Shown piece after piece: positions 36,864 through 53,195 of a stretch of DNA of 64,000 nt. Location: contig CAJFCJ010000024.1 of assembly GCA_904063045.1 (NCBI GenBank), positions 62,001 to 126,000 of the forward strand, read 5' to 3'. Within the stretch, counting starts at the first letter, position 1; each line of letters opens with the position of its first letter. Source of the stretch: Dimorphilus gyrociliatus (taxonomy: Eukaryota > Animalia > Annelida). Position numbers and translations under genes: made by a program. A model generated the notes under the pieces. It made no database searches. It was not told where the DNA came from and was given only the letters and a program-made list of their open reading frames with translations.

Positions 36864-39800
36864 TAGTATATATATATATATATATATACAATAAATTTAT
36901 ATATACAAAAATGTGCATACAGCCTATTCCTAGCTAAGTAATTAGCCTTTTCGATCGGTCAAAAATAGAATAGCTGCCCAAAAGCAATAAGTCCAGTCGA
37001 TTGTAAAGAATTCTAAGTTTACCTTGTTTTTTTGTTATTAAACAACTAAACACTTAAAGCGTGTTCAGTGCAATTCTACATATTGCGACTGGTTCTAATT
37101 AAGGGTATTTTTAAAATAAATAATTAAAAATTTTAAACTAGTGTAAAAAAAATTGTTTGCAGAAAATAAAATGAAAATCAATTTTTTTTTTTTTGCATGG
37201 AGACAATTAAAATCCCCGGAAAATAAATGAGAAAAGCTCTTTCTTTGACAGAGTTAACCGTCATTGCATCACGCGGATGAAGCTTTAAATAAATGATTTT
37301 AAAAAAGAAAGCGATAATTTTTTTTCTTTCCTAAATTTTAATGTCAAGTTAACGAAAAATTGGATATTATTGTAAAACTGGACCCTAAAAAAACATACCT
37401 GATGTTGTAATCTGGTAAGGCCACGCAACCATAGAATCTGGCCTCGTTTTCCATCATCATCCATATCATACATGTCAACGCCTGCTCCTCCATCCATGCC
37501 TTGGGCGTTCGTATTTCTGCCTTCACCCCAGGTAAATAGTCCAGTGGGTATCACCGTAGACGGCACGGTAGTAACTAGCTGACCCCATAAGAGGCCGCCG
37601 ACGCCCAAGAAAACGCACCACAACCATTGATCGGGCGTTAGTGCAGCAGTCGACATAGCGACATCACCAAATTGTATAATTATTGTCTGGGCAATCATTG
37701 TAGTTATCCAGATCGAAACGAAGATCGGATTACTAAACAGACCCTTAAAAATGTTACGTTGATTATGAATCTTGCGGGCGTTGATTTCATTGAACAATGT
37801 CATCATGACGAAAGTATTAAATATGATGGTAAAATGCTGCGTAGGCGGTCCGCTGTTTTGTTCCCTACCGGAATCTATATCGAATAGTCTATCACCCACG
37901 AATAACAGGATCAGAATGACTGTAATTTGGTAAATAGCATGACCGAGAATGTTTTTCGTCATTGTAACTGAGACGAGCGGTTTAGTTCGGCCATATGGTT
38001 TCCTTTCGAGCAGTTCTTCCGTAGGCATTTCCGTAGCAAGGGCCAACGAGGCTAGAGTGTCCATAATCAGGTTCACCCACAACATTTGTATAGCCTTGAG
38101 TGGCGAATCGCTTATTATACACGCTCCCAAAAAGGCTACGATAACCGCGACAACATTGACCGTTAACTGAAATTGCAAAAATTTCGAAATAGAATCGTAA
38201 ACATTCCTTCCCCACATAACTGCCTTGACAATTGACGTAAAATTATCATCAGTAAGAATAATATCCGATGCCTCTTTAGCAACGTCTGTTCCAGCAATAC
38301 CCATAGCAAATCCGACATCAGCTTTTTTCAAAGCTGGACCATCATTAGTACCATCTCCAGTTACAGCAACTACTTCTCTATTTTCAGTAACTTTAGATTC
38401 TATTATACCTTGAACAAGAGTATGTTTATCAGTCGGTGATGATCTAGCTAAAACCCTCAAATCAGGCCATATTTTATCAATTAATTCTTGACGGACGTTA
38501 CCGTTTTCGTCACGTACCCTAGTATTAAATTCCTTTCCTTCGAGTACTAGAAATTGGTCGCCTGGTTTAATTATTCCACATTTAATAGCAATGGAGCGGG
38601 CCGTATTAACGTTATCACCAGTAACCATTCTAACGCAAATTCCAGAACGTTGGCATTTTCGAATAGCCTCAGGTACTTCAGGCCGAACAGGGTCTTCTAT
38701 GCCGACAATGCAAATGCAAGTCAATTCCGTTACAATCTTCGTATCTTCAGCCTCCCAATCTGGATCTGTACCATCCGATGGCATTCTAGCATCATTGCTT
38801 TGCATTTCAGCATCACGAGGCACGAAGTCCTTGTAAGCAACGCATATTGTTCTTAATCCATCGCAAGCCATGGGTTCAATAATATTTTTCACCATATGTT
38901 CTTGATCTTTTGATGAAAACGGTTTTATTTTTCCACCTGAAACAGAAAATTTGTATTGAATTTATTATGAAAATAACGAGGAAAGATGGCAATCGCTATA
39001 AAATTGCCGCAGGTACAGAATTAGGGCCAAACGTAAGACAACATCCGTATGCACATTTGTCAATAGTTTGGAAAGAGAAAGACAAGTTACAGTAAAATAT
39101 AAATCACCTTCTCCTATAATCCAGGTGCATCTTTTCAAAATAATTTCGCTAGCTCCTTTCGAAAATACGCGGTAGCCACCATTGTCCAATTTAACAACCG
39201 TAGACATTGATTTTCTTACGCTGTTAAATGTGTAGACTTTATACAATTTTTCTTCGGGGTATTCTGTTCTGACTTCATCATAAGTTGGGCCGCCTAAACT
39301 GTTGACATATCCAAGGAGAGCGCATTCAGTTTTATTACCCAATTGTTTTGGAAGTTCGCCGGGATTTTCAGGCTGAAGAACTTTAGAAGTATAGCCACAA
39401 TTTACAGAAATAGCTCTGGGCATAATTTCAGGTATGGGAGGTGGGAGAGCGTCCATTTTTGGTTGATTTTTATGATGTATGCCAGCTACAAAACTTTGAA
39501 CTACAGTCATCCGGTTTGTGGTCAATGTTCCTGTTTTATCCGAGCAAATGGCAGTGGCATTGCCCATAGTTTCGCAAGCGTCCAAATGTCTAACTAAATT
39601 ATTGTCGTCCATCATTTTCCTTACAGAATAAGCTAAGGCCAAAGTGACGGCGAGCGGTAAACCCTCAGGAACGGCGACCACAAGAACAGTTACTCCTAGG
39701 ATGAAGTATTTGATAAAATGTTTAAAATGTGCATTATTCCATGGATCATTCCTCATCACATAGGTTTTAATGCAAAACTTCACTATTAGAACGATAACGG

Positions 39801-41827
39801 TTACGACAGCGATAGCAGTACCAGCATAGCCAATTTGAATGGCCAATCGAGTAAGTTTTGCTTGAAGTACGGATTTCTCTCTTCGGCCAGATTGAGCAGC
39901 CGCTGGTGGTTGTTCTTCTTTTTGTTTCTCATCCGATGTTCCCTGAGCAGCTGGCCCATTTGCCTGATCAGCACCTTTCTCTGTTTTCTTCTTTGCCTCT
40001 TCCTCTTGAACGGCGCCAAGTAAAGTGAAAATCTGGCCAGCTTGCGAATACACGCCGACAGCTGTTACCACTATCTTACCAGAACCTTCCATAACGTGCG
40101 TTCCAGAATACAGCATTGGATCTTTGTCAACACCTTTCGTAACCTGGTGGGTTTCTCCAGTTAGAGACGATTCGTCCATTTTCAAATCGTTCGACTGGAT
40201 GACTATACCATCGGCAGGTAATAAATCTCCGTATTTCACCTGAAGGAATAACACACGATAAAGTAAATAAAACCGACAAGGTAATACTAGTATGAGAATT
40301 TACTGTCAAGCGTAATTAAAGGTGATAAAATTGGACGATTTAGCGAATAGATCGCTTATCTGTTTGTACCGAAAAGTTAGATAGATCGCGTTAAGAGAGG
40401 GGTCTCATTGCTAGCTGACAATCTTGTTATAGTTAAAAGAAAAAAACGATCGACTTTCTTTTTTTAGATTCTACCTTCAACTCAATCCGATCAACTGTAC
40501 ATTTAACTATTAATATCCCTCGGCAAAAATGAACTTCCTTGAGGTTGTGCGAAACTAGGAAAAAAGAGCTTCGGCAATAGCCGTCAGGGAGAACTTTGTG
40601 AGATGTTTATTGGCTATTTCCACGTATTGGACCTCCCGCCTAATTTTATCCTTACCTGAACAATTTCTCCGACCACAATATCCGACACTGGAATTTGAAG
40701 GTTTTCACCATTCCTTATTACAGCAAATTTGTGCTCATGCTCGATTTTGCTTTGCAATCCTCGGAATTGCTTCTCCTTTTGCCAGTCGTTTACTGCAGTT
40801 ACAATTACAACAACTATCACGGCAATTAAAATAGCTGCTCCTTCTATCCATTCTGCATGAGAATCGTGTTTTTCTTTCTTCCTACTACCTTCTGCAAAAG
40901 GAAAATTAATGCAATGAGTGAATAGACTATGCATGGAAGTAGCGTAAGTACTCTAGGCAGCTTTTCAATTATTTTTCCAAATACTTCTTCAAAATACCTA
41001 ATGTAAATACATTTAGAATAGCTATGCAAGATTTCACGTATCAGAAATAAGCTCTTCAGCTTTGTTATTCGTTTTAATCGCGAAAAAAGATTATTCACTT
41101 AAAAATCTCCTTATAATTAATTGCTTTTTAACATAAAGTAAATGTCTATATCTTCACAATACCATTTCACACACTCACTACTTGAATTCAGGAGTTCACG
41201 CTAACGGATAATATAGATAATAATATTGAACTATGGGTAAACGTCGCGAATTCTTCAAGATAAGAAAAACAAATACCGAAATTTTCTAAAAATAAATAAA
41301 ATATCGAACTATTTAATCGTTTAAGCGTATTGCATTAACGTGCTCGCCCATTGATAAGATATCACAGACTAGAAATCAGTACAAATATGCTAACAAAGAC
41401 TGTAACGGTTTTATTCATAGCTGAATATTTTACTACAATCTTAAATGAAGACAAATTTTAACGTACCTTCTCCAATTTCTGCAGGTGGCCGATAAAAACT
41501 CAGCCCAAGAGATATAACCGCCGCAACGATTAAAATTATAAGAGTAACATCCTGCAAAGCTTCCCATACTAATTGTAAAAAAGTTTTGGGCGGTTTTGGG
41601 GGAATAACATTGGAGCCAAAAGTTGCTCGTCTTGCTCGCAAATCCTCCGCTGATGCAGATATACCTTCAGTTGGGGAAGTTCTCAGTTTTTTGCACAATT
41701 GAATAACGCCACCAGCCTCTCCAACTTTATCAATAACATTCGAATCCCCCTTCAATTCCATCAGTTGGGTAAGTTCATTGACGGTGATACCAAAGTCTCC
41801 TGCCATGGTATCCATACCCCCCGTCAT
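35065..41827 (-). CDS. ATP2B: Plasma membrane Ca2+-ATPase; exons 41467-41827, 40656-40891, 39108-40239, 37399-38936, 35065-35277
   Basis: [18 protein letters not shown], phosphorylation motif [27 protein letters not shown], and calmodulin-binding region [15 protein letters not shown]|IRVVNAFR. Confidence 0.97.
35906..35952. repeat. (TA)n microsatellite interrupted by CTA (inverted copy of the 36841 repeat)
   Basis: Read directly as (TA)10-CTA-(AT)12. Confidence 0.85.
36435..36546 (-). other. Putative alternative PMCA exon at splice site C, encoding [28 protein letters not shown]-stop
   Basis: GC-richer island in an AT-rich intron. AG acceptor at 36547-36548 is in phase 0 with the ...LQHQ donor. 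Stop at 36460; GTATGA donor after 36435. Confidence 0.5.
36841..36888. repeat. (TA)n microsatellite interrupted by TAG
   Basis: Read directly as (TA)11-T-TAG-(TA)11. Confidence 0.85.
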
Positions 41828-44800: not shown

Positions 44801-46637
44801 CCACTGACCCAGCACCGTTCCTTTTCAAAGTAAACCGTGCACAGACCAGAGCAAACAAACCAAAACGACATTTTCGGTTGAAAATTCGATTTAATGCGCC
44901 GCGGCGACTCGTTCTACATCCCCGGTCGTCCCTAATCACTCTCCTTCATTTGCCTTTTTTTCTCGCTCTCTTTCTTCTGTCCCCATTTGATTTCTGTATC
45001 TGATACGTAATTACTCTTCTGAAACTATCGCCTGTTTTCTCTTTGCCTAAACAATTTTCAACTAATACCATTAGTTGAATTATAGGCATTAGCAAATTGA
45101 TTCAAAAACGGTATATTCTTGCGAAAATACGGTCAGACGGCCGAAAATTGCCTTTCCACATCGGCTGTCACTGCCGCTCTGCAATGCATCTTTTTTTTCA
45201 AAGAAATCGATAAGGCACTTATGCGTAATGATTGCTGCCTCGTGTCAATTTTTCCTCTCAATAGTTCGTAGACCGGCAGGACAATCGATAACACAGGACA
45301 CTTTTGCTCCTCTTTTTGGTCAAACCCTAGCTAAAGCTACAATTCGCCATCTCTTCAATGTTAAGCCTCTCATTCACAAGCTGACTTTTCGAAGCTGGCG
45401 AGCAAGGGATTAAAGGACCCGCACATTATGGAGAATAGACCACACCTCAGACAAATTATCGTCTTCTGTTCTATTTTTAAGAAAAAGGCAGACACCCGCT
45501 GTCGTGCATGTATGGTTACTCTGACGTCAATCTGAATAAGCTTTTATTGACTATTATAGCAGAATAATTGCTTTTTTTATGCCTACATTATTATACAGTT
45601 ATTCACTAGTCCCGCAAACTATCCCAAACTCTACATTTGGCTCAATTACAGTTAGACGGCAACGCTATAAATAGAGGAAAGATCCTAAAATAGACTTTCA
45701 CTAAAAATTCTATGAGTTTTCGTTAAGCAAACAGACATGGACAGATCGATATCTTTTCTCTATTATTTTGTACGCCAAGAATTCCCTTTCTATCCTCAGT
45801 CCTAATAAGATGAAAAAAAACCATTTCTACATTCAGAACATCATACTAAAATACATTCTAACATGCCAATTAATTCTAATACACGAATCAGAAAGAGTCC
45901 GATTCGATAGCTTAATAAAACGAAAAATCGAAAAAGAAATGTAATGTTCATTTTATATGGTGGCCATCTTTTACAGAGCACTAGCATACAAACCGTTTTA
46001 GAGCGAAATATTCCGCTTAAGGATTAGTCAAATCCAATCTTCTCGCTACCGCCGACGCCTTCCACTACAATGTTCCGATTTTAGCGGAAATGTTGAGAAT
46101 TGCATGTAAAATTCAGAGGATTTATTGAAAAATCGTCAAGCCGGCCCCTCCGTAATATCTCAACGTCACGTGACTTATAGTCGCGCATGCGTAGTATCTA
46201 ATTAAGATCACAGCCTATAAGAGCAAAAGTAGCGTAAGTATAATCAAATGGTTATGTTTATTAATTCGCTCTGTACTATTATAACGTCATTGGTGGAATT
46301 TCGGCGCTAAAAATAGTTTAAACAATGAGTCGAATAAACAGTCATTTATATTTGTAATATAAACAATAAATTAGCGACAGAGGAATGAGTTATACTGGCT
46401 GAGATCCTCTCTGATTATGAGTTTTATTTCCCTCTACATGAAACAATGCTAAACATTTTGCTTACGTTTGCAAAAAATCGATCTCAGCCTATTTGAGGCT
46501 GTGAAAATAAAATCATTGATCAGAACAAAACAAAATTCCCGACTCTTTAATTAAGACAATTTCACGGTTGAACGATCACAAGGATAGAAAGAAGCATGAC
46601 CGATAGATGGCGTGTAACAAATTTAAAAAAAAAACAA

Positions 46638-47208
46638 TTAAACGCCACTAATAACACTAGACGAAAGAGTTTTGTAGGGATTAAGAACGCAATTCGGATC
46701 AAACAATGCTTTAATTCGCTTCATTAATTTCACTGCCGAAGTCCCCTTACTGTAACGGATGCATTCGTTCTTGTGAAATCCCAAACCTGCATAGAAGAAA
46801 GTCCCTAAACTGAAAATCGAATATTTTGGCTTATTAAATTCCCAAACCGTGTTCGGCGCTCACGCTTCCATTTAGCTGGGCGACCGACTCGAAAACAAAA
46901 ATTTCCAGTGCTGACTTTACATCCTTTTCGAATTTTTTAGACACAATATTTAAGTGAAGATTACCTTTTTTTGGAATAACCAAATATCTGTAATCAATGT
47001 TCAATCGATTGCTAAAAGGATGCTATTACATACCATCTCCAACATGACCATATCCCATGCAATATAAGACAGGATAGCCCTTCATTAGCTCCGTAACGGA
47101 TTCAGTGACTTCTGAAAATTTCGCAACTGGAATTGAGACATCAAACTTATATGTGTAGCCGTCTTGTTTACATGCTTCGGCAAGTCTCTCCCTCAGCGCC
47201 CATAAGGC
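46638..47208 (-). CDS. D2HGDH: D2HGDH 3' cassette B (canonical C-terminus); exons 47034-47208, 46848-46964, 46638-46786
   Basis: Hand translation: ALWALRERLAEACKQDGYTYKFDVSIPVAKF...GYGHVGD|GNLHLNIVSKKFEKDVKSALEIFVFESVAQLNGSVSAEH|GLGFHKNECIRYSKGTSAVKLMKRIKALFDPNCVLNPYKTLSSSVISGV-stop. No internal stops, all junctions GT-AG. Minus-strand AATAAA at 46423-46428. Confidence 0.9.
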
Positions 47209-48890
47209 CTATATTAGAGAAAAATAAGATCAACTAATGACATGTATACCACTTAGTCAATTCAAAACAATTTGATAAAGGACCAATAAAATATATTTCT
47301 CTACTTAGCAAAAAAAATAAATTCAATGGCCGTCTCATAACTCCTTTTACCCATCTAACTTCTTTTCCTCCAAACAATAATTTCATAATTATTCAAATAT
47401 ACTTGCTGTTGGTATCAGCCTTCGATCTTATAAATAATCTGTAGGCCTTCATTATAATAGTTTTTATCGTTTTGTTTGAAGTGGATAAACAATAAGACTC
47501 AATTAAGGATGCATGTATAGTTTGAAATAGATCAATCTTTTAATTTACAACTCTTGTGTTCTTAAAAGCAAGCAAAACAATTTTTTAATGAATTCATTTT
47601 TTAAAATATATTCAAATATCTTAAAATAGAATTAATGGTGAATTAAAGCAAGTACTACTAACCGCATCGGATGAGAATATTTTTTTTATTGTTATTGAAG
47701 AATACAGAAATAATGATTGTAAACTTAACAGTTTAGTCAAATATTATATAAACTAACATTCAAAGCCCCTTTTTAGACATGTGCCAAAACCAGAAATGGT
47801 CTAATGAAAAACATCTAAACATGCTAATTATGCATCTTTTTCTGGAGAAAGGTCATCTTCATTTCTATATATTCAATATAATAAAAAAAATCTTGATCAA
47901 TGTTACAACGTATAACATAATTATTTAATAATTTTTATCGAATATATCGCAAAATTTTGCGTTATAGATCGTATAGTTATGGATATTGTTAAAATATACA
48001 TTATCATTATTTATCATTTCAGTCCATTTTTCCTTCAAGTATTTATCAAGTGAATTTCTATATTACTCTCAATATAACTAACGACATAGCGACAAACGCG
48101 TATGTAGGCCTTTATCGGATTGCTGGTTATTTATAGATGACTCATGAAATAAATAAAAAAGGAAACAAGATGAAGAGAAGGAGAATGGAAGGGAAAAAAA
48201 CTGATAATGATAAGAATAATAATGAAGGAATTTTTAGGAAGTAGAGTATTAGAGAGAAAAAGAAGATAAAATATTATAATTTTTTCCCACAGTTTAAGGT
48301 TAAAAAAAACTATTTTAATTTGTTTCATCAAACTGATGTAGATTTACTCTCGTGATAATAGATTCTTACGTCTTTATGAAATTCTATACCTTTATTAAAA
48401 GTAATATTTTTTTGTGTTTAATGTTAAAATGATAAAAGTAAATGAGGAGAGAAAAGAGAGAAAAGAAAAAAAAAAGCTATCCTTATATGTATAATCCTTT
48501 GATTTAGTTAGGTAAATAATAAAAAGTAAAGAGGAGTTTAGTGCGTCTATCCTTGTGTTCTTTTGCTTTTTTTTTCTTATATTTTTTATTTGGGTTATCG
48601 AATTATCTTATTAAAACATTTTGATGTCTATTACCTTCAAAGCGAACAGCTTGTTTACACTTCGATGAATATTTAATAAACATACATATTTTCCGACGGC
48701 TGCTGTTCAATTATTTGTAATCTAGGTCATTGCTATATTTATCCTGTCGTATCGAGATATCTTTTGATAAAGCGTAATAAAGCAATATCGAAGATGTATG
48801 TGCGTCATTATATTATAGGATTAGGGATGAAGGAAGCGGAAAATAAAAGAAGTAAAAGAAAAATAGGAATAAAAAAGTCATATATGCAAC

Positions 48891-49062
48891 CTTGTCCGAA
48901 AATACAGAAAAATTTTGCATGATGAAACTTATTCGTGACGATCTGAACGACAGAGTCGAATTGCTGAACCGGAATAGCAATGTCATATTTAAAGTCGTAA
49001 CAGTCGCTTCTAACTGTTTTCGTAAGCGCTTCTTACAGTCGCGCCCTAAATTTATTGAATAT
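48891..49062 (-). pseudogene. Degenerate D2HGDH 3' cassette C (pseudo-exon)
   Basis: After a TTTTAAG acceptor, phase-0 translation is IFNKFRARL*EALTKTVRSDCYDFKYDIAIPVQQFDSVVQIVTNKFHHAKFFCIFGQG. It aligns to ALWALRERLAEA...YKFDVSIPV...GYGH. In-frame TAA at 49033-49035. Confidence 0.7.
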
Positions 49063-51232
49063 CTTAAAAGCCAAAAATAAAAATAAAAGAAATTGCGCAT
49101 TTGGCATAAAATCATATTGAATGAACCGTATATACTGTACACGATATAAATAAATTGTCATAATATCGGCTTATTACGTTCTAGCATGCATTAACATAAA
49201 CTCAATAGTTAACTAAGTAGCAGTAAATGATATGTAATGGGTACGACAATGTCATACACCGATTTCAGAATTTCATTAGGATCAATCAACTCCTTAAGTC
49301 CTTCGATTAACTTTACTGTTCGCTCATACCTTCAATAATTCAATAACGGGCTTGTGCCTGTTTTTCTCTTATTTCAATCATACTTTGTATATGCATATAT
49401 AAAGTAAATTCAGCGTCTACAAACTATTTTGTATTAATAAGAGGAGTATTCCATTGATAAAAAGGAGGAATTAGTAGATTCATTCAAGAATTTATAGAAT
49501 TGTAATGATAATTATTATAGTTTTTTTTTCTAAAGTCATACCAGAAAAAATTATAGATATACTGTATATATGTTAGAATGCGTATGAAATATAAATAGCA
49601 GTCTATAATTCTTATTTAAATGTTAATGAATATGCTCATTGCTCTTAACCATTGTTTAACATTGACACCATATACAATTCTAAGGTAGGATAAGTTAATG
49701 ATACACTGGTCTAAAGCGAAGCAATACATCTACTATATCATATAGGGTGTATAAATAATACATGTAGCATATATCTACGACAATAATCAAAATCACCTTG
49801 GGGTAATTTTCCTATCAATGTAAAGGAAATAATATATAGTTTTTCTTAGATCAACAACTTAGATATTATTATGCAATCCTCTCTTTTTCATCTTTAACAT
49901 AACGTTCTTTAAACTGCATCTGTCAAATATAATATTTCATTTCCTATTGACCCTTTATTGAAATATTTGAATGACAGATCATATCAGATTTTTATAGAAC
50001 AATGTTTTTTTAACAATAAATTAATAAAGAAAGATTTTCTCTATAGTTAAATTTAGGTTAGAAAAAAAGTATGGTAAAATAAATAGAAATACGTCAAGGA
50101 TTCTGATTAATCCTTTATTAAAAATCCAGTGGGATAAAATATTGCGAAAATCGTTAATTGGTAATGGAAAATTTGTGTGATTCGTGTCTTTCTCTTTATG
50201 TATTTTTTTTTTACCTTTCTACCTATATACGTATATAATTCATATACATTTATTTATTTATTTATAGTCATCTACTATACCCGTTCTCTTTCTCTTTTTT
50301 CTCCTTATAGGCAGTATTTTCCATTCTACTACTTTCTATCGTAGTCATCCTCTTTTATCAAAGTTTGATATTGTAAAATGAGCACTTTCAAAAGAAAAAT
50401 TTTACTAATAATTATGATTAAAAAGTAAAAACAAAACGGAATACTTCAATCCAACAAAAAAAAGGTATTGATTTCCGAAAGAAAAATTTTTCTTTATTTA
50501 CTTCAGAGAGATAATGAGAAGAAGTTCTAGACACCTAACAGCTTAATAAAATAGACGGTCTACTATAAACTCTGCTTAAGAATACTTTCTCAAAAATGAA
50601 TTTCGATAGCTTTTGCTTCGCCCTTTTCGCTTCGGTTAACGCTACTTATTTTTCATTGCGTAGAACAAATACCAACGTAATGATATACCAACAGCAAGCG
50701 AAATAACGATATAATAGTTTACAGAACGTGAACAAACATCACGACTTGGAGTAATGCCCTTTTAGGGGTGAGTGAGGGGAAAAGGGGATTTAAAATTCCA
50801 TTATTACGTATAAGACCCTAAAGTCTTTTCCATTAAATTCCACCAACTCATTTATTTTTCCTGTTTTTTTTTGGAGTAGAACAGCTGGGATAAAGAGGAT
50901 GCTAAGGACGATTACCAATTATAAGACATTCAAACCAATTTAGATGAAAAACTTAATCATTTTTATTCGAGGCGATATTCAATAGAAGTCAAGACTATAT
51001 TCCGCGCAATATAAATTCTATTTCGATTGTCGTGACCTTTAAGTCATTTTGTTGATTTCACACCTAAAAATCTTTAGTTTAAAAGTTCTTATTCTATTCA
51101 TTGTTTTTTTTAAGTAGAAGAATATCTTGTGTGATTATATATTAGTTATTGGAGAACGAATAAAATTTGTGTTATACGCTAATGCAAGGCAGAGGAAGTT
51201 TAACGTTTGGAGGCCGTTTTTTTTTAATATGT

Positions 51233-53195
51233 TTATGGAAGAGTCTTGTATGGATTCAAAATTCCTTTAGGATCCATATGATCTTTAAGTCTCTCCATTA
51301 AGTCGACGGCCGTTTTACTTTTCGATAAGTTGATGTGCTTGTTCTTTTGTGTACCTAAACCATGTTCCGCACTAATACTCCCCTTCTTCTCTGCCACCCA
51401 TTCAAAGATAAATGGTTCTAATAATTCTTGGACCTCTTTTGAATTTTCCCATTCCAATTCAACGGTAAGGTGGATATTTCCTAAATTCCACATATAGGAA
51501 TTTTGAAAAAGATAGTATGTACGTATATTTTTCGCCTTTTTTTGTACGCCTACAGCTTTTACGTAGGCTTTTACTAACCGTCTCCCAAATGTCCAAAACC
51601 GCTTACAGACGAAACAAGATTTCCGAGACGGCGTCTCAAAATTTGCGTCAATTCGTCGAACAATCGAACGCTTAAGCTGAAGTCGTAGGCCATAGACGCC
51701 TTCGGAGAGGATCCGCGGTCTGCTATGCGTTCTCGTAGTTGCCATAGCGACTGTCCGGTAGCGTTTAAATCAAGGATCCTTTGCACTTTTAACCCTACGT
51801 TAACCTCATCCCACCATCCCCCTACGTAATTTAAGCTTCATATTTTATATACTTACGTTGACTTTTGATGGTTCAGTAGCAAGCACTCCATCAGCAGCGA
51901 ATCCGCCATCTAGAGCATTGTTCAAGAAGGTATTCAATTTCTCCTCGTCATGCGATGCATTAGAACCCGACGTCTCAATTAAACAATAGAAGGGATATTT
52001 GTCTAGAGGACATTGGAGGCCTAGATTTTGTCTAACCATCTCCATGGCTGTGGAGTCCATATATTCAAAAGCGGATAGAATCTCCCCCAATTTCCCCTTG
52101 GCAACATCTAACGTCTCCAATACACTTTTGTAGTCCGGGCAACCTGTATTTATTTTTTAAGACAGTAATAATTTCCGCAGAGGGTGGATTGTTTAAAACT
52201 TAACCAAGTAAGGCGACGTTAACACTTTTAGGCTGTTTGGCACAAAGGATCGACACTTTCGTTACAACACCTAAATTTCCTTCCGAGCCTATAAATAATT
52301 GCTTCAAATCATATCCAGTATTATCTTTCCTAAGTGTAGACAAGCAATCGATTATTTCCCCGTTAGCCAACACCTGCAATGGTTTAAAAGACGAAAAATT
52401 TTTAATATTATATTACAGAGAATTTCCATACAGCTTCTAAACCCAAAATGGATCCGTGTAAAGATCCATAACGTAAGAGTCGGAGACCGCCAGCATTCGT
52501 CGAAACATTTCCCCCTATCTGGCAGGAGCCCTTAGCCCCCAGGTCATAGGGAATTATATAATCAAATTCCCTCGCGTACTCGTCCAACTTCTCTAATATA
52601 CAACCGGATTCACAAGTAAGGACGCCTGAGAAAGCGTCGAAATTAATTATTCGATTCATTCGCTCAGTGGACAAGATAACCTCGTCGAAAACTGGTACGC
52701 TACCCCCAACTAAGCCCGTATTACCTAGATAATTTGAAGATATTTAGCAACGGAAATACATGGTTAATCGGGAACCAAACCTCCTTGTACTGACACAGCT
52801 ATTTTTCTCTCATTACAATACCCCAATATTTTTGATATCTCTTCTGCAGACTTGGGCCTAAGAACTAGGTCGCTTTTACCTAATTAACCCGTAATTGCTT
52901 TATTGTGTAATTCTTAGTGTAAATAGTACTAACCTCTGACAGTTTTCAGCCAATCTGTATTGTAACCACTTAAGTCCTCGTCCTTCGAACTCAGTATTTG
53001 ACCCGAATTCGTCAAAATCTTTTTAAAAGCTTCTATATCATAATCCTGCAAAATTGCAAAGTCCCCCCGTTTTAAATGAGGATATCTGTCACTGGTGTAC
53101 GGAATATTTTCCAACCGACGACTAGTCGTTAAAGACCTAGTTATGGTGAGCGATAGTAGACGGTTTTTATAGATTTTCATCAAATATCTATTCAT
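51233..53195 (-). CDS. D2HGDH: D-2-hydroxyglutarate dehydrogenase-family FAD oxidoreductase. Shared exons: 52934-53195, 52781-52879, 52432-52724, 52205-52373, 51857-52143. Cassette A exons: 51579-51750, 51233-51480.
   Basis: Presequence-like N-terminus, [103 protein letters not shown]. Confidence 0.95.

Follow-up and report, generated by a model that had tools for sequence, protein, structure and literature searches.

The window analysed here is a 64,000-nucleotide (nt) stretch of AT-rich animal DNA from the annelid Dimorphilus gyrociliatus (GenBank assembly GCA_904063045.1, contig CAJFCJ010000024.1, positions 62,001 to 126,000), and its minus strand carries a D2HGDH gene in which five shared exons (53195-51857, 370 codons) are followed by two intact terminal cassettes, A and B (Table 1). 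D2HGDH clears D-2-hydroxyglutarate (D-2-HG). A first reading of the window from its letters alone (hereafter the sequence-only reading) had proposed the exon and cassette coordinates, all of which were verified by gene model and translation. Splice sites are canonical throughout the whole gene model, the B2 donor GTTTGG being of the same type as the conserved exon 2 donor.

Membership of the D2HGDH family is supported by the order of domains, FAD_binding_4 followed by FAD-oxidase_C. Exon 3 matches PF01565 (FAD_binding_4) in Pfam at 7e-20, and its closest relatives are D2HGDH-like proteins with 60-74% identity over the exon. Exons 1-5 encode an N-terminus that, judged by eye, looks like a presequence, as well as FAD_binding_4 and, of FAD-oxidase_C, the first half. 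The sequence-only reading had assigned to these exons a presequence and the FAD-binding domain; they also carry the first ~95 residues of the FAD-oxidase_C cap domain, which already lie in exon 5 (an exon 5 homologue, P0273, carries PF02913). Its description of one FAD module with two caps goes too far, since half of the cap domain is also shared.

A search with exon 5 identified a 92-amino-acid (aa) open reading frame (ORF) of 80% identity on Logan contig L001 of a related worm (run SRR23372228). This contig, which is genomic, aligns colinearly to 53396-50478 (80.6% nucleotide identity); both exons 1-5 and cassette A are present in it, and their splice sites are the same.

Table 1. Features of the D2HGDH locus, in the order of transcription (positions in the window)
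Feature	Positions	Strand	Remarks
Exon 1	53195-52934	-	gene model and translation
Exon 2	52879-52781	-	gene model and translation
Exon 3	52724-52432	-	gene model and translation
Exon 4	52373-52205	-	gene model and translation
Exon 5	52143-51857	-	phase-0 donor AAC/GTAAGT
Intron 5, ahead of cassette A	51856-51751	-	106 nt
Cassette A (exons A1, A2)	51750-51579, 51480-51233	-	139 aa + stop
ATTAAA poly(A) signal after A	51228-51223	-	
AATAAA poly(A) signal after A	50967-50962	-	kept in related worm
Decayed cassette-end-like piece	49325-49260	-	profile E 0.047, profile positions 113-134
Decayed cassette first exon	49032-48874	-	profile E 3.7e-6, profile positions 7-59
Cassette B (exons B1, B2, B3)	47208-47034, 46964-46848, 46786-46638	-	146 aa + stop
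ATTAAA poly(A) signal after B	46551-46546	-	
Distal AATAAA poly(A) signal after B	46428-46423	-	

Cassettes A and B are homologous (45% identity, blastp 2e-40) and lie in tandem on one strand downstream of the shared exons, in compatible splice phase and with the same phase-0 start position. Every cassette exon matches PF02913 (FAD-oxidase_C), with E-values down to 3e-19, over profile positions ~106-248 of 248; rather than an entire cap, the cassettes exchange its second half and the small C-terminal domain or tail. A stop codon and poly(A) signals are present in or after each of them. The two AATAAA sites named in the sequence-only reading are both present, and a nearer ATTAAA was additionally found after each stop. 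In the bivalve Mercenaria mercenaria (L025), introns occur at the same positions as those at the cassette start (phase 0) and after Gly-Asp-Gly (phase 1, shared by both cassettes), which indicates that A and B both inherited the ancestral acceptor. Two other comparators for intron position, P0124 and P0091, were dropped as intronless genes in compact, non-animal-like contigs. The 61-nt intron between B2 and B3 (46847-46787) is absent from cassette A and from the bivalve orthologue, in which an intron sits 9 codons earlier. It is flanked by a direct repeat, GGTTTGGGA, present at the donor and again just past the acceptor, and looks like the product of a small tandem duplication.

To compare the substrate pockets, the cassette exons were aligned to human D2HGDH (PDB 6LPN) and to a family alignment of 40 relatives, with residue roles taken from the structure of the human enzyme (PMC7801405). 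The human protein has the same domains, FAD_binding_4 and FAD-oxidase_C. All eight residues considered are kept in cassette B, whereas cassette A replaces three of them. Both cassettes retain Arg386, which binds the C1-carboxylate, the metal ligands His434, His441 and Glu475, and the catalytic base His476. Lys401, which makes a salt bridge to the C5-carboxylate, is Ala in A, and the C5-carboxylate pocket residues Tyr432 and Asn443 are Phe and Thr. Lys401 and Asn443 show strict conservation among D2HGDH orthologues and Tyr432 is highly conserved, and mutation of Lys401 alone abolishes the activity of the human enzyme (PMC7801405). The same three changes (Lys401Ala, Tyr432Phe and Asn443Thr) are found in cassette A of the related worm. 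The C5-carboxylate pocket characteristic of D2HGDH is complete in B and disrupted in A, supporting the earlier proposal that the cassettes would provide different substrate pockets. By these residues, isoform B is predicted to have the canonical D-2-HG pocket, and isoform A, which would keep the chemistry in a neutral pocket, would not count as a canonical D2HGDH. Because the residues holding the distal carboxylate are lost, isoform A should show poor or no activity with D-2-HG and may prefer other (neutral or hydrophobic) D-2-hydroxyacids.

Both cassettes show signs of constraint. Over 138 aligned codons, the identity of A and B at codon positions 1, 2 and 3 is 0.52, 0.68 and 0.31, the pattern of an old duplication in which silent sites are saturated and replacement sites constrained, with both copies under selection. 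Among 41 relatives in which conservation was scored, cassette B keeps 23/24 columns conserved to at least 95% and 35/37 conserved to at least 80%; the counts for cassette A are 24/24 and 32/37. In the comparison with the related worm, the dN/dS ratio (nonsynonymous to synonymous change, Nei-Gojobori) is 0.086 over exons 1-5 and, in cassette A, which has 87% aa identity, 0.153, so that A is a working coding unit in both worms. The GC content of the B exons is 42%, vs. 28% in the interval between the cassettes, and a long-dead copy in such stop-triplet-rich DNA would be expected to resemble the fragments near 49 kb rather than B. Purifying selection is evident both on A (from dN/dS) and on B (from the codon-position pattern and the conserved columns). 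The proportion of synonymous differences (pS) between the two worms (L001 vs. 53195-51233) is uneven, at 0.14-0.16 in exon 1 and A1 and 0.54-0.73 in exons 2, 4, 5 and A2, where it exceeds the ~20% divergence of several introns; RNA constraint, mosaic ancestry and assembly are candidate causes.

How cassette B could be expressed was approached by elimination. An in-frame TAG precedes the acceptor at 47208, and B1 contains no ATG, GTG or TTG before codon 42, with conserved residues including Arg386 and Lys401 located in codons 1-41. B1 is therefore translatable only once spliced to an upstream phase-0 coding exon. Searches of the whole 64 kb for a second copy of exons 1-5, by tblastn with the 370-aa N-terminal part and with a profile hidden Markov model (HMM) built from ~40 relatives, matched exons 1-5 only, which agrees with the earlier statement that no promoter-proximal or FAD-domain exons were found between the cassettes. 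The exon 5 donor was the sole suitable splice partner found for B1. For D. gyrociliatus, neither spliced leaders nor trans-splicing nor operons are reported in the genome paper (PMC7854359). With no start in B1, no other N-terminal exons and no reported trans-splicing, a splice from exon 5 to B1 is likely.

RNA data bear on the 3′ end of B. A 236-nt cDNA contig from a metatranscriptome (run X9), 99% identical with two mismatches, maps to 46773-46538 on the minus strand. It falls wholly inside the predicted 249-nt interval formed by B3 and its 3′ untranslated region (UTR; 46786 to ~46538) and ends 8 nt past the proximal ATTAAA. The chance of a random genomic piece falling inside this interval is ~14/5616 positions of the searched stretch. 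We read this contig, which reaches no splice junction, as mRNA, so that the end of B would be transcribed. B3 was the only exon covered; runs X1, X3 and X8 gave only spurious matches of 18-25 nt in AT-rich DNA. Word shares for X1/X2, 0.13 over 46400-52250 as a whole and 0.20 over the B region, are not convertible to exon maps. RNA contigs of conserved genes may be filtered out, and gaps in RNA coverage prove nothing.

Taken together, these results favour a single D2HGDH gene with tandemly duplicated alternative terminal cassettes, a reading to which we assign a probability of about 0.7; its architecture is observed directly, and the splice to B is the step that we infer. Transcription would start upstream of 53195, and exons 1-5 would always be used. 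Use of the weak acceptor at 51750 would give an mRNA that ends with cassette A and is polyadenylated past 51233. If A's acceptor and poly(A) sites were bypassed, exon 5 would be joined to the strong acceptor 4.6 kb away at 47208, giving an mRNA that ends with B. The two cassettes would then be mutually exclusive, and both proteins would have the presequence, the FAD domain and the cap's first half in common. A further step, that by such a swap of pocket cassettes one gene makes both a canonical D2HGDH and a re-specified D-2-hydroxyacid dehydrogenase, under the control of a conserved weak acceptor and its conserved intronic flank, and could thereby, in a worm whose genome is miniaturised, replace a separate paralogue such as LDHD, is put forward tentatively, and we consider it somewhat doubtful.

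Several observations weigh against alternative use of the two cassettes. The intron from exon 5 to B1 would be ~4.6 kb, very long for a compact genome, and use of B requires passing A's poly(A) signals. In the four RNA runs searched, no read or contig joined 51857 to 47208 or to 51750, and almost nothing fell on the exons of the gene, which neither supports nor refutes the proposal. The earlier suggestion that alternative last exons give two enzymes from one gene is partly supported, by the anatomy and the pocket differences, and a 51857>47208 transcript was not observed. A degenerate pattern for both spliced junctions had 0 matches in JGI metagenome contigs, a search that is uninformative because the A junction is missing too. 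B1 found only distant relatives, at most 47% identical, among metagenome contigs. The worm's own annotated protein was not found by queries with exon 3, a moth orthologue, exon 5 or B3: the representative protein search with exon 3 had no match above 74% identity, the matches listed for the moth orthologue were arthropod proteins with one bivalve and one plant protein, exon 5 matched the related worm and not D. gyrociliatus itself, and B3 retrieved no candidate protein. The comparison with a related species, proposed as a check by the sequence-only reading, confirmed the conservation of exons 1-5 and A and went no further, as the relative's three contigs, which come from one study, all end ~600-770 nt past A's stop, short of any B.

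The missing junctions, together with the two decayed neighbouring copies and the location of B 4 kb past A's stop and poly(A) signals, would be expected if B were an orphaned partial duplicate, included in no productive mRNA and heading for decay like the fragments between A and B. This is unlikely, because the three exons of B keep canonical splice sites intact and stay open for 146 codons against a stop-rich background of 28% GC, and because third positions are at random level between A and B (0.31) yet identity is 0.52/0.68 at first and second positions, with 35/37 family columns kept. A cDNA contig matches its terminal exon and UTR, and, without B, the gene would have no form with Lys401 and Asn443, which are needed for D-2-HG oxidation. 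That the same contig comes from a run showing nothing for A or exons 1-5 could instead mean that B is transcribed separately, from a promoter of its own and with an upstream coding exon in 47.2-51.2 kb that went unrecognised, making a short protein or fusion without the FAD domain, and an unexplained conserved block at ~50850-50500 could be the regulatory element or exon in question. We regard this as very improbable: a 146-aa half cap without an FAD site could not alone keep catalytic residues under selection, the interval contains no family-like ORF or other recognisable coding exon, and the block has no Rfam match or notable fold.

Alternatively, both cassettes may be spliced in, with isoform A being catalytically weak or regulatory, for example as a heterodimer partner or through diversion of transcripts that lowers D2HGDH output. 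Lys401 mutation alone kills the human enzyme (PMC7801405), and no substrate is known for the A pocket. Such a role is nevertheless quite unlikely for a cassette that keeps all five metal, C1-carboxylate and catalytic-base residues and 24/24 of the columns at least 95% conserved, under purifying selection with a dN/dS of 0.15. The paralogues D-LDH and GlcD, with other residues at these pocket positions, are active enzymes, and lepidopteran and fungal family members also replace Lys401, their activity not being known.

Alternative use of A and B from a single D2HGDH gene would have precedents in other families. Each cassette of the Drosophila genes pipe and PGRP-LC encodes a whole domain. In both genes, homologous terminal cassettes stand in tandem behind the common 5′ exons and exclude one another in the transcript (PMC9013439). 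The worm locus likewise has shared upstream exons and tandem homologous 3′ cassettes, each of which would end the mRNA, that encode alternative versions of one domain; it differs in that pipe and PGRP-LC are transcript-proven, belong to other protein families and contain more cassettes, whereas the worm has two live cassettes plus decayed ones and a splice to B that is predicted. Tandem duplicated exon substitutions are a recognised class (PMC9741552, PMC8373072), with which the worm gene shares an ancient tandem duplication and homologous alternative segments that would tune function, both copies being selected. Members of that class are mostly single internal exons, unlike the multi-exon terminal unit with stop and poly(A) signals duplicated here. 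The D2HGDH cassettes would extend the known class of tandem terminal cassettes and would not be a new kind of arrangement. We know of no duplicated terminal cassettes in the human D2HGDH gene. The sequence-only reading had considered the arrangement not described before for D2HGDH, and no paper that connects D2HGDH to exon duplication turned up in a literature search.

The residues altered in cassette A correspond to a known determinant of specificity. In LDHD, “subsite B” (equivalents of Thr390, Lys401 and Asn443) sets the difference between D2HGDH and D-lactate dehydrogenase (PMC10589216). Like LDHD, the worm protein has the same catalytic “subsite A”, and cassette A is altered at exactly the subsite B positions. 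LDHD, however, is a complete paralogous gene of its own, and its hydrophobic subsite B is Trp/Ser/Ile, in contrast to Ala/Ala/Thr plus Phe432 in cassette A. In many Lepidoptera, two D2HGDH-like genes lie together on one contig. In Galleria (P0004 and P0191, one contig), the second copy has Lys401 changed to Thr with the catalytic core kept, in parallel with cassette A; there the whole gene is duplicated, vs. only the last third in the worm. Fungal paralogues, likewise products of whole-gene duplication, carry Ala, His or Thr at Lys401.

If the exon 5 to B splice is real, the locus would be a natural experiment in which a constant FAD module, metal site and catalytic base are combined with two exchangeable specificity subsites, and partial gene duplication with an alternative last exon would do the job of whole-gene duplication in Lepidoptera and fungi. 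Isoforms A and B would be a convenient natural pair with which to ask what residues underlie specificity for D-2-HG vs. other D-2-hydroxyacids. Because D2HGDH is medically relevant, through D-2-hydroxyglutaric aciduria and oncometabolite clearance, natural variants of its pocket would be useful.

The history of the array was examined by running a cassette profile HMM over the window, which matched A, B and two decayed pieces. The piece at 49032-48874 has an in-frame stop just upstream, and its GHxGDG motif is degraded to GQG, with loss of the metal-binding His. The sequence-only reading had placed a decayed third cassette between A and B. Decayed material is indeed there; the order of the pieces, an end and then a start, suggests either two or more dead cassettes or one that was rearranged. 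The array thus appears to have formerly had three or four cassette units. No DNA-level repeats are left at the locus, which indicates that the duplications are old. The cassette tree did not resolve their origin: A is placed on a long branch beside a fungal paralogue that also lacks Lys401, probably through convergence or long branches, and B (53% identical to a crustacean sequence) is placed among animal sequences. A clade of A and B is not rejected (p-AU, approximately unbiased test, 0.33). The data would fit a tandem duplication specific to the lineage, after which A diverged.

Some features of the locus hint at regulated choice between the cassettes. The A1 acceptor is weak and purine-rich, and the B1 acceptor is strong, with a good pyrimidine tract ahead of it. 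In the related worm, identity is 98% over the final ~50 nt of intron 5 and 88-94% over A1 and its donor flank, compared with 78-86% for the constitutive exons 4 and 5 and ~50% for the first 200 nt past A's stop. Conserved intronic flanks are usual for regulated exons. The low pS of A1 (0.14) was given little weight as a sign of splicing control, as the value for exon 1 is just as low (0.16) and the exons differ widely in pS. When intron 5 was searched for long-range RNA pairing with the sequence ahead of B1, only AT-rich chance matches came up.

The block at 50850-50500 (~350 nt), ultraconserved and non-coding, is 86-100% identical to the related worm, 250 nt of it at 96-100%, vs. 78-93% for coding exons. 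It sits between A's AATAAA and the decayed cassettes and would fall inside the exon 5 to B1 intron; the related worm's contigs all end near its far side. No Rfam match, tRNA or notable fold was found in it on either strand. Downstream of the D2HGDH locus, large minus-strand ORFs at 37285-41827 encode a plasma-membrane-type calcium ATPase with P-type ATPase motifs, and ~4.5 kb separates the end of cassette B from the first coding exon of this gene.

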